DNA of 64,000 bases from Blastocladiella emersonii ATCC 22665 (GCA_025594325.1 JANHCV010000001.1:62001-126000), one strand, 5' to 3'. Positions 1,814 to 21,223 are shown, counted from the first letter of the stretch. Notes: generated by a model from the sequence alone, not told the origin. Made by a program: numbers and translations.

Positions 1814-2139
1814 GCTGTTGCAACTCTCCTTTTGCTTTTGCGTCGCTCCGCCGCCATTTTGTAGCAGGGAGGGAAGGAGGGGGGGGGGTAGGCTGCAAGC
1901 GCTTGGTTGGGCAGGCAGACGTGCAAGACTTGGCCAATCCAAGATGCGTTCATGGTGAGCAAAGTAAGCCAACTGATCCTCTCTCATTCCCTTGGGGGGT
2001 GTATGTATGTATTTATCTATCTGGCTATCTATGTGATGTGATGTGATGACGACGTATCACTGTAGGTGAGAGATTTGAAAGCTTTCCAAGGAAGCGTGTA
2101 GTTGACTTAGAGTTGCCGCGCTCCCAGTATTGTGGACGC

Positions 2140-2390
2140 GATACCTGATACGGGAAAAGTTTTTTGGGCATGATACGATATTTGGCCCAGATTTTGCGTT
2201 CCTGGTGATACGAATACTGGGGACTTTTTTGCTACAAATCGCGATATTTCGGGCTCTGATACCAAAACTTGCGCGTTTTGGACCTGCCCGATACCAATAC
2301 CTGCACGTACAAAATCCGGGAGATACCGATACCTACAGACGAAAAGGTTGGTGATACCGATTCTTAAACTGTGGGGGATCAGGATATCAG
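2140..2390. repeat. hAT left subterminal GATAC(C/G) motif cluster
   Basis: Many GATACC/GATACG/AATACC copies directly inside the left TIR. Confidence 0.8.
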
Positions 2391-2473
2391 TTGAAGCTAA
2401 GTATGGCAAGGAGACAAGTAGAAATTACTAAACTAAGACTAGGATTGGAATGAACAACGTAAAGAATAATCGA

Positions 2474-5400
2474 CTAGTTTCTCACAACAGCCGCAGCAGC
2501 TTCCTGGGCCTTGGTCAACGCGTTGGCAGCGGCGACCTTGTCCTGGAGCTCGAGCTTATTCAAGATCAGAGCGCGGAACATCTCAGGGCCAAGACGCGAA
2601 CGATTGTGTCGAAGCACGGCCCAACAGATGGAAAAAAGTCGCTCCACTCCAGTGGTTGTAGTTGGCACAGGAAGGAGATTGAGAGCAACGCGAGAAAGCT
2701 CTGGAAAGCGGTGCTCGTGATCCTTCCACCACTTGATTGGATCTTGCATGCGGAAGTCTCTTTTGTTTGCCATGTTGCAGTAGGCAATGTAGGCGTCGTT
2801 TTCGTCTGTTCCTGCAACCGGAGCGTCATCGTCGTAATCAAAATCGGGATCAAAGTCCTGCTCGATCCCCAGCGGAGCGACAACAGGCGTGATGGGGACA
2901 ATCCCATTGCTAACGCGAGCACGCATCTCGCTAAGTGGAGCATGCACGAATTTCGCGTAGTCAACATTAGCAAGACCCTGCTCGCGGTATTTTTTCATGG
3001 TTATCAAGCCTTGTCCAAAAGGGCTGAGCCACTGGGCGACATTAAAAACATCAGGAAGTCGCGCGTAGTGCTTGTTGAGAAGACCGTAAGCAGCGATCGC
3101 AGTAATAGCCACAATCACCTTTGGCGGCTGAAGACGCAATGTGAGCTGCTCGGTAATGCGAGGGCATGGACCAGGAGCGGTGTGGAGCGTCTTTTTCGAT
3201 GCCGCCTCCTTCTCGTCCTTAAGTTTACGAGCAGAACAGTGCGCGTCGGTTGCGCCCATTGGGACAACGTTGACTCCACTTGAGAGAGCCAAGGCGGCAT
3301 CCCGCTTTCTTGCAGCACTGCGAGTCACAGCGCTATCACGCAAGGGAGTCACAGGCGCAAGCTCCTCTAGGGGCTCCAAGTCAGATTCGTTGTCATTGCG
3401 CAAAGCCTCCTGATCACAAGCATCCTCGGGGGCAATATCCTTGGAGTCTGAATCAGCATCAAAGAGGTACTCAATTGCATCGTCCGACATGAGAAGGTTC
3501 ATGCTGTAGTCCTCGGGCGTGGAAGCAACGCCAAGTGCAGCAAGAATAACTTTCTCAAAGTGATTAAAGTCTGCAGGGTGGACATGCTGTCGCACGTGGT
3601 CCTTGAAAGCAGTGAAGATCTTTTCATAAGTGAAGATTCCATGTGGAAGGGTCCAGGAGTGACGCCCTCGTTTAGTTTCGCTGTGACGCCGTAGATTGAA
3701 CCAAGCAGGGCTGAGATCTCTGTGATGATCCCCCAGTCCTTCTCTTCAAGGTTGAGCTCCGGGTAGCAGTGCTTGGCATAGACGTCATCAATGGCACCGC
3801 GAAGCTGCAGAAGGCCAAGAAGCGAGTTATGAGTGCTGAACCAACGAGTCTGGACGTCCTTGACAACGCATAAGGTCTTCAAACCGTGAGCTTTAGCCGC
3901 CTCAGCAAGGTTCTTGCGGTAAGCAGACTGATTGTAAAGCACGCAAATGAGAGGCTTGAACTTGGGGCACACATGGTGCAAGATGCCAATGATCCGCTGC
4001 ACGGCGCGGTTGATACTGTGCTGGATGCAAAACACAAGCACAATGTGCCCGCCGCCATGCTGCTGCTGAAGAACCCGGAGAGCCGCCTTGTTGGCAGAAG
4101 CATTGTTGGCCGCAATGGCGAAGACCCAGGAGATGTCAATCTTGTAATCTTGGAGCAAGTCGACAATGACCTGGGCAATACCCTCGCCATCCTTGGCATC
4201 GGTTGGCACGAGATCCAAGAGGAGCCTGTAGCGTTGACAAACACTGTCAATCGTGATCATGAAGGAAACGCGGACACCTGGAGACGAAAGTGGTAACCGT
4301 TAGCATCGATGCATGTTCTGTTGGTAGGGTTGGGTGTGGGCTGGAGAAATCAGACCAGCTGGTCCGATTTCTCTAGGCGGCCCAAGGAAAATCAGACCGG
4401 CCGGTCCAATTTCTCCAGGTGGCCCAAGGAGCTGCAACACAGGTGAGAAAACGTACCCATGAAGGAGATGCCGTTTGTCGAGGTCCACCCGTCAATCAGG
4501 AGCGTGAGGTCTGAGTCCTACTTGGCGACGAGAGCGCCTTGGCGCTTGTGGACGTGCGCTCCCCCACCGAGAATGTTCTTGGACACAGTCGTGCGGTGTG
4601 GGATCTTGACGCCAGGGCAGATGGTCGCAATGAGCTTGCGGAACAAGACAGAATTGACGACCGAGATGGACTGGTCCTTGCCGCACAGGAACTCACTGAG
4701 CGCGGCGTCAAAAGCACTCTGCGTGACCAACGACACTTGACCTTGCGGCGGGACGCCAAACATGTCGTTCACCTTGTCCTGCGGCGGCACGTCGTCCATG
4801 ACGGCAGACTCAGCGGCAAGGTCCAAGTTGGCTCAAAGGTGTTGATGGTGGTCGTAGAACGGCTTGAGCTTGGGCGAGCTCTTGGCGATCTTGTTGTGGT
4901 GCGTCATCATGTGCTTGCCAATGTTGGACCAGCTGGTCTTGTTTGACATCTTGAAGGAGGCCTTGTTGGGGTTCAGGATGAGGCAGATCTTGCACACGGC
5001 GTGGTCCTCCTTGAACTGGCTGAACGCGTGCTCAATAGAGGAGTTGCGGAAGTCGTGGTCCCCGACTTGAAACCCGGGTTTCAGGTCATGTGACCGCCCA
5101 AAACCGGTTTTCACCGCGCCAGATCGCGGCGACCCGGACCTGAACCTTGAGCTTCCCGCTCGCCTCTCACCCCCCGCACCCCTAATATAACAAGATGGCA
5201 GCTGATGGAGCTCTCGTACTTGGTGAAATGGACCTCAACCTCGAGGACCTAGAAGCTCTCCGCGACCTGCTGGCCATGGCCGCAAGATCCGTTGGGCACG
5301 AGTTGCGGTGGTGGTGGTAGGTGTAGAACAGGTCCTTGAGCGCAGTGCGCGCCTGGGCCTCGGGCGGGGGGTTGATCACCGACTTTTTCACCACCCGCCT

Positions 5401-5666
5401 GCTACCCGCCGTCTTGGTGACCAGGCACAGGGTCGCCGGCCGCGGCGTGGGGTCGCTGGCCGCGGCGTGGGGGCGGCGGCGCTCCCACCACCAGCAGACA
5501 CGGCGTCGTTGTCGCTGAGCAGGATCACGTTGTCGCCGTTGTTGCTGGGCTGCGCGGGGTTCTCGGCCGTGGTGGCGCGATGCCGCTTGCTGCCGCTGGT
5601 GGCAAACGCAGCCATGATTGACGCTGGCCGCTTGGCAGGTGGGGTAGGTCGAGAGTTTCGTGACAT
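2474..5666 (-). pseudogene. hAT transposase, multi-exon, inactivated
   Basis: BED finger (CKIC...HMMTHH), first catalytic motif LIDGWTS, CIQH (CxxH), TRWFST, and C-terminal dimerisation domain DPIKWW...VERLFS. Lesions: TAG at 4518-4520, second Asp read as AANNAS (4105-4107), and a frame change near 3600-3670. Intron 4278-4456 (GTACGT...CAG) splices in frame. The 5' exons are approximate. Confidence 0.9.
4341..4430. repeat. Palindromic repeat in a hAT transposase intron
   Basis: Units like GGAGAAATCAGACCAGCTGGTCCGATTTCTC. An inverted homologue lies at ~12085-12230. Confidence 0.85.
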
Positions 5667-6359
5667 TGCAGTGGTGGTGGTGCAACTAGACCAAATACAA
5701 GTCGATCGTCAAGAGGTTTGAAAGTCAACAGTTGGGCGAGAGGAGAGGTGGACTGCGCAGCGGAGCAGCGGGAGTGGGCGGGCTCGCGGACGGTGGCAGC
5801 CGCGGCCGCTCAATCGCCGAGATGATGTGCATTTTGCTCACGTGGCTCTCACATGATTACGTTGCAAGGCACGTCCCGCATGGCCGTGGCATGTACCAGC
5901 TCGCTCGGCCAACGCATCAAGCGCATCGTTCAGAACAGAACAGCGTGCAGGTGTACGCTAGGGCAGGAAGTCGCTGGTCAGCTCACTGAAGCAGTTGCAG
6001 CCTGCTGCTTGACTGCGCAGTGGTACCTCTCTGCACCCGCGCGCGCTGTGAGAAAGTCGTCACATGGAACGGCAGCGCCGCATCAAGCAAGCGAAGTTGG
6101 ACAGAGGCAAGGGTTGGAGTTGGATCAAAGCTGTGTGGTCACACGGCGCGTGGCGAGCTTGCGCCGCGAGCTTACCCTGGATCGCAAGGGCAGGATCAGC
6201 TTTGCACGATACGAGCAAAGATGCTCGTCCGTCCGCTTTACTACGGCGTGGGTCAGGACGCGGGCGATCAAGCGCAGCGTGAAGCTCGTGGTGCCTGGTT
6301 CGCTGCGCTGTGCAGGACGACGAGGGCATGCAACGACGTCATGAACGTCGCATGCGGAG

Positions 6360-6830
6360 GAGCGAGTACATCGCGATCCGCGGCTGGATGCGAGCGAGCG
6401 TCACAAGGAACGGGTGTAGCGCGATCCGCGGCGAGCGTCACGAGGAACGGGTGTGGCGCGATCCGCGGCGAAGTGTGGGCGTCGCGAAGAACGAGAGCAT
6501 CGCGATCGGCGAGGTGCGGGCGTCGCGACGAACGGAAGCATCGCGATCCGCGGCTGGATGCGAGCGAGCGTCACGAGGAACGGGTGTGGCGCGATCCGCG
6601 GCGAGGTGTGGGCGTCGCGAAGAACGAGAGCATCGCAATCCACGGCGAGGTGCGGGCGAGCGTCGCGAGAAACGAGTGCAGCGTGATCCACGGCGAGACG
6701 CGGGCGTCGTGAAGAACGGTCACAGCGCAATCCACGGCGAGATGCGGGCGTCGCGAAGAACGAGAGCAGCGCGATCCACGGCGAGGTGCGGGCTTTGCGA
6801 AGATTGGTCGCGACGCGATCCGTGGCGGGA
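6360..6830. repeat. ~44-bp degenerate minisatellite (about 10 units)
   Basis: Recurring GCGTCRCGARGAACG-N6-7-GCGATCCRCGGCGAGGTGYGG units. Confidence 0.85.
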
Positions 6831-7910
6831 TGCACCGCGTGTGGCGAATGCGACGTGGTGTGCAGCATGGAGCGGGCGGTGATAGGGACGAGGTCAACGA
6901 GTACTGAGGGGCGAGGTTGGGCGAGCGGCAGGTGAGTGGGCGGCATGTGTGTGGAACGGAGTGGGAGCTGTGTAGCGCGCCATACGCGCCGTGCGGCGAC
7001 AGGCCGAGCGCCGCGCATCGCGCGCGTTACGCCACGAGGAACATTCGCGACTAGGAGTTGGAAACATCGAGGCGTCCGTGTTGCAGCGGGGTGGGGGAGG
7101 CGCGACTTATCGCGCGGCGGAGGACGAGAATGGATGTTGAATGGCGGTGCGTCAGTACAGCGGGTCGCATCGCGAGGAGCGAAGAGCGAGTACAGCGTGG
7201 CAGGCAGCGAAGGGAGGGGTTTAGCGAGGGGCGGGGGAGCTGGCTGGCGCGGAGCGGGTGCGAAGAAAGGGGGATGAGGGAGGCGAGGGGCATGGTGGAT
7301 ACGCTGAAGGGCGGGGAACGAGAGCACGGCGTCATAGAGGGAAGGTTGCAAGGGCAATCACGCGATGCTAGAGGAGACCAAAGTAGCAGTTCGAGGTCAC
7401 GCGCGCGGGTTGCACTGCGAGCGAGCCTTGGCGCCGGTCCGAGTGGGAGCGGCACAAATGTGGCAAGCGGCGCGCCAGGAGACAAGGCCTCGCGGGACGA
7501 GGCGATGGAAGCGCTTGTGTTCAAGTCGCACAGGCGGGCGGCGGCGCAGTGCAGCGAGTTACATGTTCAGATCATCGGAATACATGGCAGGCGGGATCGG
7601 ACAAGAGGAGAGCCGGAGCTGGTCGCGGGAGGCGAGCGCGCGTTGTCCAATCGACTGGGCGTGGGCGTGGGACGCGAGACGAAGATCGCGCGTCGCGGTG
7701 ATATGTGATCCCACGTGCGGGCGAATTCGCCACGTGGCGGCAGGCTTATCGTTTTCGCTCCACGGGGATCAACGGGCCAGGCTGGCGCCGAGCCGCCTGC
7801 CCGCCCTCGCTTGCTTGCCGCCGTGCACACTCTCCCTCCCTCCCTCCCGCCTCTCTTCCGCCCCCGCTCGCGCATCTTGGATCGCTCCCTCCCAGAACGT
7901 GCTCTTGACC

Positions 7911-10900
7911 ATGGCATCGACACCCAACGCACCCGCCAGCCCGTCGGCGGCTTCCTTGGCCTCAACGCCGCCCGCGTTGCCCCGCCCAACGGCTTCCTTG
8001 GCCTCAACGCCGCCGTCGTCGCCGCCGCCGCCCCGTGGCCGCTCTCCCACCCGCGCCTCCTCACTGTCGCCGTCACCTGCACCCCATGCTGCGCGCCCCT
8101 TGCGTAAGCATCCGCCCATTGTCCAGTCTGAATCAGAGTCTTCGGACAGTGATAATGACGTTGACAAGGACGGTGCGCCAAAGATGCCTCCGCCCCCCTC
8201 GCCCACCGACTCGGCGATTGCCTCCTCGCCTGAGCCTCTGCGCGATGGAGCTGTCCGTGTTGGCGCGGGTGAGGTCGCTCTGCCCACCGCTACTGCCCCA
8301 CTAGGGGTGTGTGCGTTGCACACTCTGTCTCAGCAGTAGGCGACTCGGCTGGCTGGCAAATGACTGAACATCAAAGTCGAGTTGACGGGATGTGGTCCGT
8401 CTTGCTTGAGGGAAGCAGTTTTGCTAAGTCGAGCATGCGCCAGTCGCTGTCGCCCTGACCGCTGCTCTTAACAACGAGCTGCCGCCAAAGGAGTGGTCCG
8501 GTTGTGGAGGGCTTGCGGACGAGATCAACGCACTCGAGGTCAAAGATTTCGTTGGGTTGGAGATCGAGGCGACGCGCGTGTTTCGCGGCGGCCATCAAGT
8601 TCCACGCGTCGCGCACCGAGTTCTGCGCCGTGATGAGGACCTGGTCGCTCCAGTCGTTGAGCTGGCCTGGGTGCTGGCCCAGTACGACGTCTGCTCGCCG
8701 CGAGCCGAGGTACTCGATCACGCGCTGCGAGACGATGCAGTTGCGCAGGTCTTGGAGCACGTTGAGGAAGCTCGCGTCGCCCGACTGCCGCATCTGCTGC
8801 ACGTGGAAGAAGACCGAGTCAGAGGCGAGCCACTGATCGCGACCAATGTTGGCGTCAGTTGGAGTTCTGCTGACCGCTGGCCGCTCCTTGCGCTTGGACG
8901 CGCGCTTCTTCTGCTGCTGCTGCTGCTGCTGCTGAGGCTCGCCGTCGACCTGCATCAAGTCGCCATCATGAGCTGCATCCACCTCGGGTTCGGGTGCGCG
9001 TTTGACCGGCTGCTCAGATGGAACCGTGAGTGAGCGGGCCATGACGAGCTCGAACTGGAAAAAGTCGCCAAACGCGAGGACGTGCAGGCCGCCAAACGGA
9101 CGATGGTCGCGGCTCGGGTATAGCGCGTCGAAGCGCAAGTGCATTGCGGCGAACAGCTTGGCGTCGACCATGGAGATCTCGTCGATGAGGACAAACTTGA
9201 CGGGGCGGAACGACGCCTCGAGCTCGGCCTTGGCTTTGTCGCTCATCGGCTTGGTCGCCGAGACGATGGTACCGATACCACACATCAGCGTTGCCACGCT
9301 AGATGGCATTGAGCGTTGACTCGACGTGCTCAACGACGCGGCGCTCCTCAACGTTGAGCCCTTGAAGGTACGGAGCGAGTTGCTCCTGTCGCGCGAGCTG
9401 CACCCGGACGGCTGGCGGTGCGACACCACCGTCTGCTTGAACAAGTTGAGCGCGAGGTGGCTCCGCCAAGCGTTCTGCAGCAAACCGACGGGCATCCTCG
9501 TCGGCCTTTCTGGCCAGATCGGCGTAGTTGGCGAGTTGCGCGAACCATGCCGGATCCGAGTCGACCTTGAGCAGCTGCTGGCAAAGCTCGAGTAGCAGGC
9601 ACGGGCGCGTTCGAGTTTGAGAGCAGTCCGTAGTGTACTGCCGACATGAGGAGCATGGCCGCGTGCTGGTCGTTCTGGGAGATGATCGAGAGGATCTCGT
9701 GCAGGAAAGCGTCTTTGCCGTGAGCTTCTTGCGCGATGCCGACTGGCATGATCTCACCGTCAGCCTCGTCGTCGTTACCCATGCCAGTACCGCCGGCGCG
9801 TCGAAGGTCGACCTGCTTGGGCGTCGCGCTGTTGTCGGCCTCCGAATCGTCGACCAGCTTGCCGGGTGACGTGTCCACGTAGTCGCGGAAGTTGTTGATC
9901 CACCGGAGCCGGTCGCTGCCCTGCTCGAGCGTGCTTTTGAAGAGATCGAGCGTCTGCGACCACGTCTCGCCGCGAGCCGGAGCCACCTTGTTGATGGCGC
10001 GGAACGTCTTGAACAGGATCATGGAGATCATGGCGCGCGACTCGGTGCTGCCGATATCTGACGACTGGCTGACCTGCTTGTTGAGCAGCGGCACGGGAAC
10101 GACCTTGGCCGCGCGCATCGCGACGACGAGCTTGCCGACTGCAGCATGGGTGCCGCGGAACTTGTACCGCGGCTCGGCGTGGCGACCGCGCTTGGCGCGC
10201 GGCATGTTGCCGTTGTCCGCATTGTTGTCGGGCACGGACTGCTGCGAGCGGTTCGTCGTGGGCTTGATGGGCTCCACGCGACAGCACCAGACAAAGTCGT
10301 AGAGCGAGATCGACTTGAGCTCGCTGGGCCGGTGCATGTAGTGGTCGCTGATGGTGACTTTGTCAGTGATTGGGCGGTTCTCGAACGTGATGCGCTCGTC
10401 GTCGTTCTTGTCGTCCTCCTGCTCGAGCTCGCGTTCATTGTCGACTGCCGCGGCGCCATCCTTGCCGACGCGCTGCGCGTCAGTTGTGTTGCCTGATGCG
10501 TCCGAGCCCGCCGCGTTTGTGACCATGCGCAGGAACTGGTAGAGCGGGCCGTGGGCGAAGATGTACGTCGTGGAGACCCACGTCTCCTCGCCCTTGCGGA
10601 TCAGGTCAAGCGCGATCTGCTGCCCGTTGATCTCACGCGACGTGGTCAAGCGGTTGACGAGGCCGCGCAGAATGGAGCTGATGGAGAGCTGGAGCGTAAC
10701 TTCTTGGCGCGCTCAAGGGGGGCGTACGTGCTGTAAGAGTATGGCGGCACCTTGGCGACGTAGTTGGTGATGTGGTACATGACATTTGCGGGGTTGAAGC
10801 CAAGAAGCAGAAAACCAGATCTCAGGCTTCCTTCAGAGCTCCATGTAACGCGAAGAAAATGGACACAGAGCGCTTCAAGAGAAGGATATCTGAGCAAAAA

Positions 10901-13108
10901 AAACAGTCAAAGAAGTGAATTCACGATTGTGATGAACACGGGGGTAGGGAAGAAGACGAAAGACAGAAGTGGATCAAATCGGTCATGACTCCGCTAGATG
11001 ATGCTTTCTATGGTGCCAACCTTGTTGCATAGAGTTACAGGATAGATTGTATCAGAGTATTTAGAGAAGAGTGAGGAGAAGATTATTCGAGCGCGACCGA
11101 GACGCGTTGCGACGCGTGTTGATGGGAGTGGCAGAAAAGTCAGGCGTGCCAAATGGCCCAGCTTGAGCGCGAATTCAGCTCCACAGAAACTCAGCCTACT
11201 GCTGAGAACCTGCTGGTGCTATGGCGCCCGCTGCTGCTCTTGGCCTCGCTGGCGGCGGTGATGGCGAGCGCGACCTCAAGGACGCTATGGAGGAGACCCT
11301 TAAGGGCGGCGGCGTGTTCCTCAGGCTCACCGGCAACGACGTCAAGGACCCTCGCAAGACCGCGCAGTATGCCCTCGTCTGCTTGCTGCAACCTCTCGGA
11401 CTTGTGGTGCTGATAACAAACGAACGTATGGTTCTGGGAGGCGTCTTCGCGACGCTCAAGCAGGCCGTCCCTGACAGGCCCGCCTTCACCAAGTTCGCCC
11501 GCGAGCTGCTGCTGGAGCTGGCACCAGAGCAGTCCAACACGGCCACGGGTGCGCACGGCGCGACGTCGGCTACCTTTGCACTGGCCGCTGCCACCACTTC
11601 CTTGTTGTCAGCGGCCACTGCTGCTGAGCTTGACGCCAAGCTCTGCGAGGACGGTATCCCCGAGGTCGCGCTCTACACCTCCACCGTGGTACGTTGTCCA
11701 ACTGGTTTACCTCCAGGTCCTGGTGCTGACCAATTGATCTCTGTCCAGACTGGTGGTCTCGTGAAGGTTGAGCCTCCCGGCGCCGATACCAACCCTTCCT
11801 TGTCGTCTGTTCCCCCTGTCGCTGCGCCAACAGCCGCCCCGGCTGTATTGACGTTGGCCCCTGTCCCGCCCAAGGCGTCCAAGCGCGCGCGCTCGGCGTC
11901 CATGGGTGCCAAGGCCAATAAGCGCGCGGCGTCCGCCGCAGCTGTCGCTGCTGCTGATCCCGCTGCTGCCGCCGCCGCCGAATCTGACTCCAAGGACCCC
12001 CGGAACAAGGTGCGTAACCTCTCTCTTTCCTCGCCCTCAACCTCCCACTGCACTCCGCTGATCGCCACGAATGGACCAGACGGGCCTGTCCGATTTTCCT
12101 CGGGTCACCAGGAGAAATTGGACAGGCCGGTCTGATTTTCCTTGGGTCGCCTGGAGAAATCGGACTGGCTGGTCCGATTTTTCTTAGGTCACCTGGAGAA
12201 ATCGGACCGGCTGGTCTGATTTTCCTCGAGCGTCACCATCATCACTTGACCATCCAATGACGACTTGTACTGACCAACGTTCACTTGATTCATCCCAGGC
12301 CATGCTCGAGACCACGATTGGAGGAGTGATTGCCTGCGCGCAGCTGGGCGTCGGCATTGTCGCCAACACCGAGTTCATGCAGTCCAAGGCCGCGCTCACT
12401 CCCGAGTCGATCCGCAAGGAGCTCAGCAGTGGCAACCCCGTGCACAAGATTGTCAAGATGGGCGCTGACCGTGCCCTCGCCCGGTCCAGTGTTTTGGGCG
12501 TTTCCGAGGCTGTGCGCATGTTTGTCGAGCTCGTGGGGTGCTCCCAGAACCTCAAGGCCCTTGTCAACAAGTACCCCCAGCGCAATGTCATGGTCGGTGA
12601 TCTCGCCTTCCTGTTCTTTGCTAAGAGGACGGCCAATCCGAAAGCGACCCCGCTCGCCAAGGAAACCGCTCTCAAGCGCACCTTTCTACCATTTTTCAAA
12701 CTCCCTCACATCTTGAAGCGCCTCCCCCCAACGAGTTCCGGCGAGTCCCAGGCTCGCTTTTGCTATATCTCGTACTGCTGCATGGCCACGGTCTTGCACA
12801 TTGTGGTCGGGCCAGCTCTTGTCCCCATCATCCTCGGCAAGCTTAGTTCCGCCACTTACTCGTCCTTTGGGAACAAGTTTGCCACCTTGTACACGTCCCT
12901 GATGGGCCTGACTGAGGCTGACATTGTCTTCCTGCGCGCGGAGCTTGAGAAAGTCGCCCCAGCGGCTGACTACAAGCCGCTCTTCCAGTTCCAGAAGACC
13001 CTGGACGTTGATGGCAAGGAGCACAACACCATGGACATCATCACCAAGGCGTTCCATGAGCTGTCCTCAATCAGTCTCCCTGCCGAGATCCCTGCTCATT
13101 GGCTTTGA
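7911..13108 (+). CDS. Unknown second gene of the hAT unit, split by Helitron2 insertion (7911-8300, 11209-12009, 12299-13108)
   Basis: Removing 8301-11208 joins ...ACT GCC CCA|CCT GCT GGT GCT ATG in frame (TAP|PAGAM). Phase-0 intron 12010-12298 (GTGCGT...CCAG) joins in frame to the 12257-13108 ORF. No recognisable domain. Confidence 0.7.
8301..11208 (-). mobile_element. Helitron2-type element with internally deleted RepHel
   Basis: On the minus strand it starts TTCTCAGCAGTAGGCTGAG (5' hairpin) and ends GCCTACTGCTGAGA-cag-AGTGTGCAACGCACAC-acccCTAG followed by T. The 14-bp ATIRs are at 11194-11207 and 8328-8341. RepHel remnants lie inside in the same orientation. Confidence 0.85.
8371..10800 (-). 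pseudogene. Helitron Rep/PIF1-helicase remnant
   Basis: Rep tail YHITNYVAK, DHYMHRPSELKSISLYDF and MILFKTFR motifs. PIF1 motifs VLIDEISMV, FGGLHVLAFGDFFQF and QQMRQ. No HUH motif, Walker A or helicase C-terminus seen; frameshifts present. Confidence 0.85.
12085..12230. repeat. Palindromic repeat array in the intron of the hAT second gene
   Basis: About 4 units of GGAGAAATCGGACCGGCTGGTCYGATTTT, an inverted homologue of 4341-4430. Confidence 0.85.
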
Positions 13109-13287
13109 GTCGTGCTGCTTTCAATGTATTTGTGTTCTTAGTTCACTTTGAATAGCGTGGTGCAAAGACTTGCTGCTGAACCTTGACTTTACAAGCGATT
13201 AGTGCTGAATCTTGAGTTAGCGTTGAGAAATATGCTCAAGCGTGCAGGATAACCCTCAATACTGGAATGTTATGAGGTGGTGCGCCA

Positions 13288-13575
13288 CGATACCCATAAA
13301 CATGATTGCTGGGATGTATAGCGATAGGGGATACCGATACTTGGAATTTTTGAGTTGCGCCTGAGGAGCGATACCGATACTTGGAGTTATTGAGATGCGC
13401 CTCAGGAGCGATACCGATACTGACGGGTGCGCGTGGGACGATACCAATACTGCCCCCGGAAGCGCCAGGAATGGCGATATTTTGGGGGGCGATACCGATT
13501 TGTGCTCTACTGAGCTCGCAGCTACGCTCGCCAATACCAATACTGGTCCTATTCGCGGAAACCAATACCAATACT
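13288..13575. repeat. hAT right subterminal GATACCGATAC/AATACCAATAC cluster
   Basis: Many GATAC/AATAC copies immediately inside the right TIR. Confidence 0.8.
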
Positions 13576-15078
13576 GTGGACCCGAACTGACCGCGGCAAC
13601 TCTAAGGAGGCGTACCCGCTCGCCGTGATCGTGGCAGCAACCAACGCGACTGCGCGGGCCGTTCAGCGCTGATGCGGGGCGCGCGAGCTACGGGATCGCG
13701 ACGAGAGCGAGTGAGACACACTGCGCGGGCGCGGATGTGCGAGAGACGGCGAGCAGGGCGGCGGCGGAGCGGCATCCACGTCGGTCTTGGGCCCATCACC
13801 ACGAGAGGTGGGCGGGCGGGCGACCAACGTTGCCGCCGCGCGTGTGCGCCGTGACGAGCGGGTCGCGGGGACGCGCACCGTGACGTGGAGCCAAGCGTGC
13901 GAGTGCGGGTGCGCTTCGTCGTGTAGCGTTAATCGGTCGGGCGGCAAGCTCCACTTGGTCGGCGGGCGCGGGTTGAGTGTGCAGCGACGGCGGCGTGGAG
14001 CGGCGGATGGGATGGCGGCGGCGGCGAGCGTGTGCAGGAGCGTCAGTCGGTGCAAGGGGACCCGCCCGCTTATGTAGGGGCCGGGCGGGAGCGAGCGAGC
14101 AGGGGGCGGGGGCGGGTGGCTGCGGAAGCGCAGAGTCGATCGCCGAAGCGCCGAAGCGGCCAACGCGCAGCGCGCTGATCAAAAAACGCGCATCACGTGT
14201 TTTTGCGACGCGTCTCGCACTGTCTCGCGCGTCCGCCCCGAGCCGCACCCGACGCGTCCGCGCCACCACGGACCACCATACACGATGCAGAAAACAATCG
14301 TAACAACTCAAACTTCAGTCCTCGCGTTTGTTAAGAAACAGAACGCTCCGCCGCGCAGTCTCGTCACGGACCGCAACTCGCAATACGTCTTGGTGCTCGC
14401 GCGCAACCTACTAGCCACCCTCACAGACACACCACCAGGAGCTCTCTATCATCACCCGCACCAACGGTACTGCTGGCCGGGGCTGTGGGGCGCGGGTCAA
14501 AGCGGGCATGAAGCAGACCGCCTCGAGTTGACCTCAGCGAGCTTGCGGATCCGCTCCTAAGAGATGTCTAACATACCAAACGTGTCAGGAAGTTCAACGT
14601 CGGGCACCGAAGTGACGCGAGTGTTGCGGACGGAAGGCCAGGAAACCATGGGTGGCGGCCGAGCGCGGCGGAGTCCTAAAGTGGAGCCCAAGACGGGAAC
14701 CAGCTGCTGGCCACGCCGACCACCGCGACGGTCGCGACTTCTCTCCCATACCTAACATGCTGCCGACGATAAACCTTCACCACTTACTGCAAATGTATAA
14801 ACAACATGAAAATGGCCTCTGCGTCGTGCCATTTGGTCAAATGAAGCTGTACCTCCTGCCAGCACGACGAGGCCGCCGCACAGCGCCACACTGGCCTTGC
14901 ACCATTGTTGCGGGCGGGTTCTGATCGGATATGACTCGGACAGCAAAGAGCCCATGTTGGGCGCGTCCGAAGCTATTTATGAAGCCTACGACCACGCCTC
15001 GAGGCGCCCACACTGCAATCCCCGCTGTTCCACTTTGCCAGCGAGGGCCGCTTCAAGCTTGCAATTTTCAAGGAGTGG

Positions 15079-16639: not shown

Positions 16640-16855
16640 TGAGTTGCATAGAGTTAGAGGGTAGATTTATTAAGAGGATTTGGAGAAAATTAAGGAGAAG
16701 ATAATTCGAGCTCGACCGAGACGCGTTGCGACGCGTGTTGATGGGAGTGGCAGAAAAATCAGGCGTGCCAAATGGCCCAGCTTGAGCGCGAATTCAGCTC
16801 CACAGAAACTCAGCCTACTGCTGAGAATAAGTGTGTGCGCAGCACACACACCTAG
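16640..16855 (+). mobile_element. Helitron2-family terminus (ATIR + GTGTGTGCGCAGCACACAC hairpin + CTAG)
   Basis: GCCTACTGCTGAGA at 16813-16826, hairpin 16831-16849, CTAG 16852-16855. 16640-16828 is a direct homologue of ~11020-11208. Confidence 0.75.
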
Positions 16856-18776: not shown

Positions 18777-21223
18777 TTCTCAGCTGTAGCTTTAGCGAAG
18801 CTGAGTTTCTGTGGGAGCAATTGAAACCTATCAGGCACATCAACCTTGCTCTTGTGGTCACATGAGTGGCTCAGTGACCGTTTTCGATTTTCGTCGCGCG
18901 ACGAGTTCCGTTGTTTTTCGCTTTCACTTCATTCCGACCCCTGCAACGTAAATCTGGACTGTGCTTTGCCTAGTCCCCAACAGTTCGAGGCTGTTCACTT
19001 CGAGGGGAGCGAGGTCCTGTGCAGCGGTTCCCGTGCGCAGGCGCGACAAGACGGACCTCGCTCGAAACTGACTGTTCAGCATCACGTGACCTGACATCAA
19101 TCCTGTCTGGCTGCATTTTCGCGCCCTCGGAAGCTCTCCCACTCCACGCCCGCTCGCTCGCGCTTGCCGCTGCTCGTCGACGCTCTTTGAGACCTCCTGT
19201 GCTGACCAGCTCTTTACCCGCCACTCCTACCCCATGCAGCGCTTAATACTTCGCGATCCGGCGTCTGCCTGGCCGCCATGCGGCCACATATAAAGGCGCG
19301 CGGGCCGCCGCTGACAGTCCTTGCTCTCCTCCACCACTCGCAACACCATGAACTTCTCTCCCACGTTCTCGCTGCGCTGCTTGTCGCGCTTCACGGTTCT
19401 CTCCGAGCTTCCGTCTCCGCCGTCGAGCCCCTTCCTCTTCTTCAACATCGAGATCCCCGTCCGCTACTCGCCTGGTGTTCCCCTCATCAACGCCAACGCC
19501 TCGACCGATCCGCTTGGCTTGCTGCAGGCCACGGCCGTCACGTACCGCGGCAGCCTGCTCGTCGGCAACTTGTACAAGGCCGACGGCTTCATCAAGATTG
19601 ACGTGTGCCCGTCCGTGACGGCTCCAACCTTCGACGCCCCCAAGACGCTCGTGTTCTACCCGATCGCTTCCAGCCTGCTCGGTCAACTCGACCCCGCCAT
19701 CCGCTACCCTGACCCCGCAATCATCAGCAGCCTGTTCACCTTCGGTTCAGTCGTCCTCATTGATTCGTTCCCTCACCGCGCTCACACACATCTCCCACTT
19801 CTAGGCGGCGGCAAGACGTTCGCCATGTGCCAACCCACGCTTGAACTGGCCCAGCCCATGACCATCATGAACAGCACGTTGCAGTTCCTCGACCCGACGC
19901 ACCGCGGCCAGCCTGCTCCCCGCACAACCACGTGGTCCATGAGCTGTGTGATCCCGACCAACCGGTACGTCCTGATCCGCTGTTCGACTCTTCTGCGAAT
20001 CTTCTCACTCACGAATCGATGTGCAGTGTGCATGGCAGTAAGGGCCTGTGGGTGACGGGCAAGACCATGCTCGTCTCTGGCCCGCTGTTCTGCGGCTTCG
20101 AGGGTGCGGCTAACGACGACCACTTCACCATGTCCTCGTCCGTCGCCTTCTTCATCACCAAGATGCGGTCGGTCGCCACTGCAACGGCTCCGCCTCCTTC
20201 GCAGGGCCCCAACGGTCCGCCCATGTTCACGGCCGGTCCCTCGTCGCCTGCCAAGATGGTTCCCAGCGCTGCGGCCGCGCCCGCTGCGCTCGTCCCGCTC
20301 ATGGCCGCGTGCACCACCCGCTCGCCGACTTCCACCTTGGCGTCCGTCAACGCGCTGTCGGGCGGCACCACGTCGGGCAGCACCACGTCCAGCAGCGCCA
20401 CGACGCCGTCGGGACCCGCGGCGTCGGCCGTTGTCCAGGAGCTTGACTGCAGGAGTGGGACGACGTTGGCAGCGAGTCCAACATGACCGTGGTTCCCACG
20501 TCGTCGTCTGCCGTGACCAAGAACAAGAACATCACCAAGATCGTTGTCGACTCGGAGGCTGATGAGGAGGTCGACGCCGACGAGGAGGAGAGGGAGTGCG
20601 AGTTGGGCCCGTCGTCGTAGTCAAGTCGCGCGCGCAAGATGGCCACCAAGGCCAAGGGCCGCGACAAGAACAAGACGGTCAAGACCCCGCCGGCCTCGCC
20701 CACCAAGCGTACCCGCACGTCAGCCATCAAGGGCAAGTCCGGCGCTGCCGTCCCTGCCGCCCAAGACAACGACGAGGCCGACGACGACGACTCGGCGACC
20801 CCGCCGGCCTCGCCGACCAAGCGCGCGCGTCGCGGTCCCGCCAAGGGCAAGCGCAAGGACCGCTTGGCCTGATCCTGATCCTGTTCCTTCCTTCGTTTCT
20901 TTCGAAAATACTTCCGCTGTCTGATATATTCCAAACTCTTTTTCTTCCAACTGGTTACTACTCGAATTTGTGAGGTGCTCGTCGACTGGCGAGCTCAAAG
21001 AGTTTACCCCTGAACTCTGAGAACGCGTTTCAAAGACGCGTTGCGTGACGCGCCGCGTCGGCGCTCGCGTTCGTGTTCTCACAACTGTGACGCGCGACGC
21101 GCAACGCGAAGAGCCCTCGCTTCTCTGTGCTCTCTCCCAAACCCACGATACACTCGGTCAATCTCAAGAAGCCAAGTAAAGCTACAGCTGAGACCCAAGT
21201 GTGTGCGCAGCACACACACCTAG
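18777..21223 (+). mobile_element. Non-autonomous Helitron2-type element with cargo gene
   Basis: Starts (T)TCTCAGCTGTAGCTTTAGCGAAGCTGAGTTTCTGTGG. The 17-bp ATIR 18778-18794 matches TAAAGCTACAGCTGAGA 21177-21193, followed by hairpin 21199-21217, CTAG 21220-21223, then T. Inserted in a T run. Confidence 0.85.
19348..20872 (+). CDS. Spliced cargo gene of unknown function (beta-rich N-terminal domains, basic/acidic tail); 3' part disrupted
   Basis: ATG at 19348; in-frame introns 19745-19804 and 19965-20026; tail with repeated TPPASPTKR motifs; stop/frameshift in the 3' part. Confidence 0.55.

Follow-up and report, generated by a model that had tools for sequence, protein, structure and literature searches.

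An internally deleted Helitron2-type element with a CTAG tip in Blastocladiella emersonii, its probable mobilisation in trans and the insertion rule of its family

How does an element with complete ends and a broken transposase gene come to lie between two reading frames that its removal joins in phase? The question is raised by 2908 bp at positions 8301-11208 of a 64,000-nt stretch of the Blastocladiella emersonii ATCC 22665 genome (GCA_025594325.1, JANHCV010000001.1:62001-126000; "the window", whose positions are used throughout), in which the remains of a RepHel gene are read on the minus strand. Identity, ends, mobilisation in trans and excision rule taken jointly, these 2908 bp very probably belong to a multi-copy Helitron2-type family, as a non-autonomous member with internal deletions. 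Further copies were sought in the whole genome, which comprises 32.6 Mb in 21 contigs with 63% GC.

The element carries the complete cis signals of such a transposon: TT, a 5' asymmetric terminal inverted repeat (ATIR) within a hairpin, a 3' ATIR, a second hairpin and CTAG. On the minus strand the 5' end reads, from 11208, TT-CTCAGC-AGTAG-GCTGAG-TTTCTGTGG, and the 3' end, finishing at 8301, reads GCCTACTGCTGAGA-CAGA-GTGTGC-AAC-GCACAC-ACCC-CTAG. In the 5' terminus (11190-11208), which is conserved in all copies, TT (11207-11208) is followed by the hairpin CTCAGC-AGTAG-GCTGAG (11190-11206), and the 5' ATIR TCTCAGCAGTAGGC (11194-11207) lies inside this hairpin, 1 nt from the 5' end. Its inverted counterpart, the 3' ATIR (8328-8341), is located 27 nt from the 3' end and just upstream of the 3' hairpin; according to a repeat finder the pair is 14 nt long and 100% complementary. 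Folded as single-stranded DNA, the 5' hairpin has a 6-bp stem of -5.9 kcal/mol (z = -3.2; 2 of 200 shuffled sequences fold equally well), which is retained in variant families with different loops. The predicted 3' hairpin, GTGTGC-AAC-GCACAC (8309-8323), is positioned 8 nt from the end and conserved in the copies, and the terminal CTAG (8301-8304), a CTRR end, is followed by a host T in all 15 distinct 3' flanks. The flanks of the window copy, ...CACCAGCAGG on one side and TGGGGCAGTA on the other, have no direct repeat in common; the insertion point is AGG^T on the minus strand (the caret marks the junction), that is, between CCA and CCT on the plus strand. A placement at 8300-11207 is equivalent, differing solely by an ambiguous T (plus-strand A at 8300 or 11208).

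Helitron2 elements are defined by ATIRs 8-15 bp long, the 5' ATIR within 0-2 bp of the 5' terminus and the 3' ATIR ~20-30 bp away from the 3' terminus, upstream of a hairpin (PMC3627910). This ATIR layout, a 5' hairpin with its ATIR, a 3' hairpin, the lack of a target site duplication (TSD) and the lack of an apurinic/apyrimidinic (AP) endonuclease are all found here, and the Helitron2 architecture recognised in a preliminary description of the locus agrees with the definition in ATIR positions, both hairpins and the 5' T. In the genome at least 100 matches to the element are listed. Among the loci examined, at least 23 distinct 5' junctions break exactly at flank^TTCTCAG... and at least 15 distinct 3' junctions at ...CCCCTAG^T. 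The termini are not a chance reading, because many copies elsewhere end at exactly the same bases; these shared breakpoints also bear out the earlier statement that both ends are fixed save one unassignable T. An apparent nested element at L012 was examined and is not a simple nested insertion.

To which side this T belongs determines whether removal of the element restores a reading frame. Every copy examined has the form N-TT-CTCAG...CTAG-T-N, which two models fit: with a single host T the element is 2908 bp long, the frame is restored and the predicted empty site is GCTACTGCCCCACCTGCTGGT; with insertion between two host Ts, in the manner of Helentrons/DINE-1, the element is 2907 bp, TCTCAG...CTAG, the predicted empty site is CCCCAACCTG and the frame remains broken. 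Although an invariant T flanks both sides of TCTCAG...CTAG in all copies, and DINE-1/Helentrons have been described with a TT preference (PMC4067079), the two-T model is very unlikely, as it would frameshift the exons in which two sister copies sit, both of which are restored by one T. The first of these copies, L004 (C7), splits its gene as ...IDKFTLVDHYMGGFVSAFYSLK ^ YPDRLDKTVLLSPIGLQGF, the left side ending FVSAFYSLK; P0007, the only homologue found for this gene, spans the site with FISASYALK (18-26), YGI and NRLEKLVLLSPIGIQGF (30 onward), and the two flanks therefore form one exon, in one frame only with a single T. At the second, L022 (C7), codon usage after the single-T join favours one and the same frame to the left and right of the junction (+28.5 and +28.3 bits), and the other frames score -57 to -126 bits. 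There is also precedent for 5'-TT...CTAG-3' ends placed before a T, in proto-Helentron-Pi (PMC4067079). Removal of 2908 bp is thus correct and leaves no duplication, because the L004 and L022 exons read through only with one T, a 1-nt T duplication being formally indistinguishable from none. The absence of a target duplication that had been proposed for the window copy is supported by its repeat-free flanks and by the exon frames that exact removal restores in these sister copies.

With the single host T, the target can be read off the junctions. At the 23 insertion sites (L001-L057), A or T occupies position -3 without exception, T prevails at -2, and -1 is A in 10, G in 9, T in 4 and C in none; all 15 sites with a 3' junction have T at +1. 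The family inserts exactly TTCTCAG...CTAG beside a host T, without duplication, at W-N-R^T sites. Junctions joining two copies head to tail, from which the number of terminal Ts could be read, were not found. Paralogous empty sites were sought for L021, L019 and L005, the flanks of which are unique, and among 350 kb of family loci no flank is repeated bar one 5' flank, whose homology stops at the junction because the junction is the gene start. At L024, an insertion in a TATA box, paralogues are 89% identical up to the junction and have an indel of ~9 nt on the other side; sequence patterns for the single-T and the two-T empty site were both unmatched there, and no gene record was found for the L024 paralogue protein in a search from which own-genome records may be excluded.

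Some of these copies occupy loci with features of their own. L004 (1321-1500 and 4374-5042; C7:672166-675038) disrupts an exon of an alpha/beta-hydrolase-like gene with DHYMGG instead of the usual GxSxG, to which a single homologue, a metagenome protein of 247 aa, could be detected; Pfam and PDB searches with the split hydrolase pieces gave no match. L024 (523-1034; C2:675166-675900) is a 2.0-kb copy in a TATAAAG-like box, 104 nt before the gene for a 136-aa secreted-looking protein with at least five paralogues (H9P43_007687, 007809, 007721, 008702 and 008658), in which the sequence is kept up to the junction. Several copies face the 5' end of an outward-reading gene, at 2, 12 and 104 nt from the ATG.

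The coding capacity between the ends can be judged against a reference. A genome scan for Helitron_like_N returned 12 places, including one uninterrupted open reading frame (ORF) of 1481 aa (C2:727771-732213). In this ORF Helitron_like_N spans residues 206-422, the HUH motif VEAQGWGSLHIH is located at 417-419 and YxxxY at 678-682; the Walker A motif GEAGTGKS lies just within the PIF1 match, which begins at residue 1182, and the helicase C-terminal motifs are found downstream of the ORF in shifted frames. A blastx comparison aligns the element with no more than residues 671-1470 and leaves ~1169-1245 unmatched; Walker A, the helicase C-terminal domain and the N-terminal 670 residues with HUH have therefore been lost. 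The sole Pfam match in the element is a PIF1 helicase fragment. Following the minus strand, the junction of a large 5' internal deletion (10796-10803), at which matches break at element + coordinates 2496-2503, marks the removal of ~670 N-terminal residues (Helitron_like_N/HUH) and brings the 5' untranslated region (UTR) next to sequence just before the Tyr motif. The remnant of the Rep tyrosine motif, MYHITNYVAK (10751-10777), has His for the first catalytic Tyr of YxxxY; two sister copies retain YYITNY. Beyond it lie the Rep-to-helicase linker ORF (9348-10649), aligned to residues ~721-1017 of the reference, the breakpoint of a 170-bp deletion that removed Walker A (9283-9285) and is common to three copies at other loci, and a leftover PIF1-like helicase segment (9040-9279; PF05970, E = 1e-8, profile positions 77-156). 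The set that marks autonomy (HUH, two Tyr, Walker A/B and a full superfamily 1 helicase) is incomplete, and the remaining frames are broken. Having no HUH, a changed first Tyr, no Walker A and no helicase C-terminal domain, the element cannot make a working RepHel. The losses of HUH, Walker A and the helicase C-terminal parts had been noted before and are seen here both by Pfam and by blastx against the 1481-aa ORF.

An element of this kind could have been moved in trans or deleted after insertion, alternatives that the preliminary description had left side by side. In an alignment of four 2.9-kb copies (C1, C20, C6 and C7) and one 3.08-kb copy, all four 2.9-kb copies carry one and the same 170-bp gap and have their end deletions in common; they diverge from one another by 3-7% and have unrelated flanks. 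Identical deletions at four or more loci with unrelated flanks mean that the deletions predate the insertions and that the deleted form moved in trans; the shared 170-bp deletion thus decides the matter. It is true that resident transposons commonly suffer internal deletions and that the window copy has 53 private substitutions, but an autonomous element that inserted at this locus and later lost its HUH, Walker A and C-terminal parts by local deletion is very unlikely, since the C20, C6 and C7 copies have the same breakpoints, the 170-bp gap included, in unrelated flanks and are hence not segmental duplicates.

Besides mobilisation in trans, the copies speak to the time of movement. Three 1.3-kb deletion derivatives on C20 (L052-L057; 748683-749867, 769255-770562 and 797956-799263, one of which breaks off after 1185 bp) are 100% identical to one another, within 50 kb, in unrelated flanks. 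Identical derivatives in unrelated flanks imply that the family moved recently, and those on C20 are evidence of very recent, local transposition. Among the private substitutions in the five aligned copies, C>T and G>A occur mostly at CpG (86 of 129), although CpG makes up only ~37% of C-dinucleotides. This bias suggests cytosine methylation of repeats, not the CpA bias that resembles repeat-induced point mutation.

The steps of the movement may be outlined after HUH/Y2 Helitron transposases (Helraiser; reviews cited in PMC8788227): RepHel supplied in trans would nick the top strand at R^TT and CTAG^T, and its helicase would peel the strand off. The 3' ATIR would pair with the 5' ATIR and, together with the 3' hairpin, mark the stop, and a single-stranded (circular) intermediate would be pasted before a T. 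At the present locus, landing at AGG^T (minus strand) would most likely have disrupted an orphan gene in its first coding exon, and precise removal of 2908 bp rejoins two open frames in phase.

What exactly was hit can be approached from both flanks. The upstream host flank (7911-8300, plus strand) is open from an ACCATGG start and, its coding status being uncertain, would encode a Pro/Ser/Ala-rich, acidic sequence; the downstream flank (11209-12135, plus strand) contains an ORF, with an ATG at 11221, that excision of the 2908 bp brings into phase with the upstream frame. CCA at 8298-8300 is a whole codon in the frame of ATG 7911, and CCT GCT GGT GCT ATG, beginning at 11209, is in the frame of ORF 11221-12135. 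Positions 11209-11580 have a clear coding signature in the frame of the preliminary description (+35 bits; GC by codon position 0.72/0.46/0.73), and with the single-T join the best frame coincides on both sides, at -9.0 and +11.2 bits, the others scoring -32 to -108. ATG 7911, the first nine codons and 1.7 kb upstream (6242-7937) are 87% identical to a C21 locus. In this C21 paralogue (L032, C21:1457940-1459613) the similarity ends abruptly 27 nt past the shared ATG.

It is fairly probable that the insertion lies in an orphan gene's first coding exon. A possible, if less likely, alternative is that the element landed in the 5' UTR or promoter, with the true ATG following 12 nt downstream, at 11221, and that the upstream in-phase frame is a coincidence. 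A frame in phase is expected by chance in one case out of three, open frames abound in a region of 66% GC such as this, and across 7911-8300 two plus frames out of three are open. The upstream flank scores ~-0.1 bit per codon; the clear coding signal begins only at ATG 11221, which has G at -3 and +4. The surroundings of other copies point the same way: their 5' ends face starts of outward-reading genes, the C20 copy being 2 nt from an ATG and L024 sitting in a TATA-like box 104 nt upstream of the secreted-protein gene, and a W-N-R^T target favours AT-rich promoter islands. On the other hand, across 8100-8300 the frame chosen in the preliminary description outscores each of the other five by 26 bits or more and is in phase with the downstream coding frame, ATG 7911 has a perfect ACCATGG context that is conserved with 1.7 kb upstream in the C21 paralogue, and the family copies L004 and L022 likewise sit in exons. 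Of the earlier claim that the host frame is restored exactly, the arithmetic of the in-phase join stands; that a real host frame is restored is less secure, the upstream coding signal being weak.

A number of observations weigh against the interpretation of the locus as an exonic insertion of a trans-mobilised Helitron2-type element. The upstream codon score, though the best of six frames, is not positive, and another frame scores higher in 7911-8100. An empty site for the locus, that is, an uninterrupted copy of the target gene as foreseen in the preliminary description, was not found in the genome (DNA, both flanks; protein, downstream ORF), with the C21 paralogue as sole partial exception. 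Homologues of the host protein were found neither in the genome nor in a 5.8-billion-protein word search nor in a 1.84-billion-protein HMMER search; protein searches with the host ORF return only NCBI's own shortened model, P0001. Part of the window matches H9P43_000065, an NCBI protein of B. emersonii ATCC 22665, at 100% identity, which identifies the genome, and the NCBI gene model begins inside the disrupted gene. Given neither empty site nor homologue, the restoration of the frame rests on the arithmetic of the join and the rule derived from sister copies. As to the source of RepHel, no intact autonomous RepHel with the same ATIRs was found in the genome, so that full-length RepHel copies with the termini described for the window element did not emerge. 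The sole uninterrupted RepHel ORF, that on C2, has different ATIRs and a mutated 5' end; it belongs to a sister family whose ATIRs, TCTCAGCTGTAGCT and AGCTACAGCTGAGA, show compensating changes relative to those of the element (covariation). The nearest Rep-bearing relative, 87% identical, is frameshifted and lies in a palindromic rearrangement. Finally, the Helitron2 class is assigned by the ends, and as to the clade of the RepHel the Rep-motif signature of related copies was checked.

The nearest Rep-bearing relative, L051 (C2:630500-640499), adjoins a 1.8-kb perfect inverted duplication (2253-4066 versus 8187-10000) as well as an inverted partial copy, and palindromic rearrangements are common in the genome. 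Within the window, an inverted 185-nt copy of the family 5' end, 92% identical, abuts the hairpin-CTAG tip of the sister family at 16643-16855; this chimeric end reads ...GCCTACTGCTGAGAA-TAA-GTGTGTGCGCAGCACACACACCTAG, the reverse complement of the 5' ATIR acting as 3' ATIR. A second Helitron2-type element, of the sister family, is located at 18777-21223, with the 5' end TTCTCAGCTGTAGCTTTAGCGAAGCTGAG and the 3' end AGCTACAGCTGAGA...GTGTGTGCGCAGCACACACACCTAG^T, the same ends as those of the element bearing the intact 1481-aa RepHel on C2.

The disrupted unit is itself part of a larger transposon. A hAT element (2106-13606) with 18-nt terminal inverted repeats (2106-2123 and 13589-13606) encloses the locus, and the C-terminus of its transposase is encoded at 2474-3595 on the minus strand (Dimer_Tnp_hAT, PF05699, E = 1.5e-14). 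The Helitron sits in the non-transposase half of the hAT element, which has a divergent gene-like unit of its own. Both hAT halves contain a palindrome-rich repeat of 87 nt (4344-4430 and 12097-12183), inverted and 89% complementary.

How does the family relate to the described Helitron variants? In the intact 1481-aa ORF only Helitron_like_N and PIF1/AAA matches are found, and no endonuclease could fit beside the helicase C-terminal motifs in the 820 bp that separate its stop from the 3' end. The motif in related Rep copies is VEAQG(W/R)G(S/T)LH(I/A)H, the window copy itself being without the HUH region; an S-type residue, as opposed to the L of Helitron1 in RG(L)PHxH, is a Helentron-side signature according to Thomas et al. 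2014 (PMC4067079). A PDB search returned PIF1 helicases only, with Helraiser as a weak, helicase-confined match (E = 8e-6), and an Atlas search only generic fungal Helitron_like_N clusters. Of a canonical Helitron, which has 5' TC, 3' CTRR and a single hairpin, at the 3' end, and inserts between A and T, the family has the CTAG and the 3' T, but it also has a 5' hairpin and ATIRs, and the 5' neighbour is A in only 10 of 23 sites; unlike a Helentron, with its C-terminal AP endonuclease and T-rich termini of variable length, it has no AP endonuclease, and the number of Ts at its termini is invariant. By its ends the family is Helitron2, and by its tips (TT...CTAG, followed by a host T) it resembles proto-Helentron and canonical Helitrons.

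Three known systems bring out these likenesses. With the Helitron2 group (Bao & Jurka 2013; Helitron-1_CRe of Chlamydomonas, FoHeli1/2 of Fusarium oxysporum) the family shares short asymmetric terminal inverted repeats, a 5' ATIR 0-2 nt from the end in a 5' hairpin, a 3' ATIR 20-30 nt from the end just upstream of a 3' hairpin, a 5' T, the lack of a TSD, a RepHel without endonuclease and ATIRs that co-vary between sister families. Here, however, a CTAG tip is followed by a host T and the target is W-N-R^T, whereas the tips in that group are T-rich and insertion occurs between TTTT and T/C in Chlamydomonas and between TNAT and A for FoHeli. Proto-Helentron-Pi (Phytophthora infestans, Thomas et al. 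2014) has the same 5' TT, 3' CTAG, insertion before T without TSD, Helentron-type Rep-motif residue and lack of an AP endonuclease; it differs in its Helitron-like ends without the ATIR/two-hairpin layout, its 14-kb length with several extra ORFs and its insertion strictly between A and T, the 5' neighbour here being A or G and sometimes T. Helitron1 elements (Helraiser, Helibat, plant Helitrons) likewise finish in CTRR a few nt beyond a 3' hairpin and are followed by a host T; they too are without a TSD and have an HUH-Y2 Rep joined to a PIF1-like helicase. In contrast to the present family, they are without ATIRs or a 5' hairpin and insert at A^T, and their Rep motif is RGLPHxH instead of the G(R/W)G(S/T)LHxH of related copies here.

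The element represents a family that is new within a known class, with well-defined limits, recent activity and an ordinary mechanism, and it does not change how Helitrons are known to work. In the open literature searched, the sole paper naming both Blastocladiella and Helitron is a Mucoromycotina genome study. A more far-reaching view, that this is an active lineage whose mixed ends (Helitron2 ATIR/two-hairpin layout plus TT...CTAG tips and insertion before T) link the described variants and whose W-N-R^T target steers it into AT-rich promoter and TATA islands, repeatedly rewiring gene starts, is rather doubtful. In practical terms, the findings aid annotation of the genome, where gene models begin inside the disrupted gene, and such Helitron-finding software as expects either Helitron1 or Helitron2 ends. 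For the biology of the group, the locus offers a clean case of a deleted copy mobilised in trans, it shows that the ATIR/two-hairpin architecture can co-occur with a CTAG tip, and it establishes to the base where a Helitron2-type family of Blastocladiomycota ends and by what rule it inserts.

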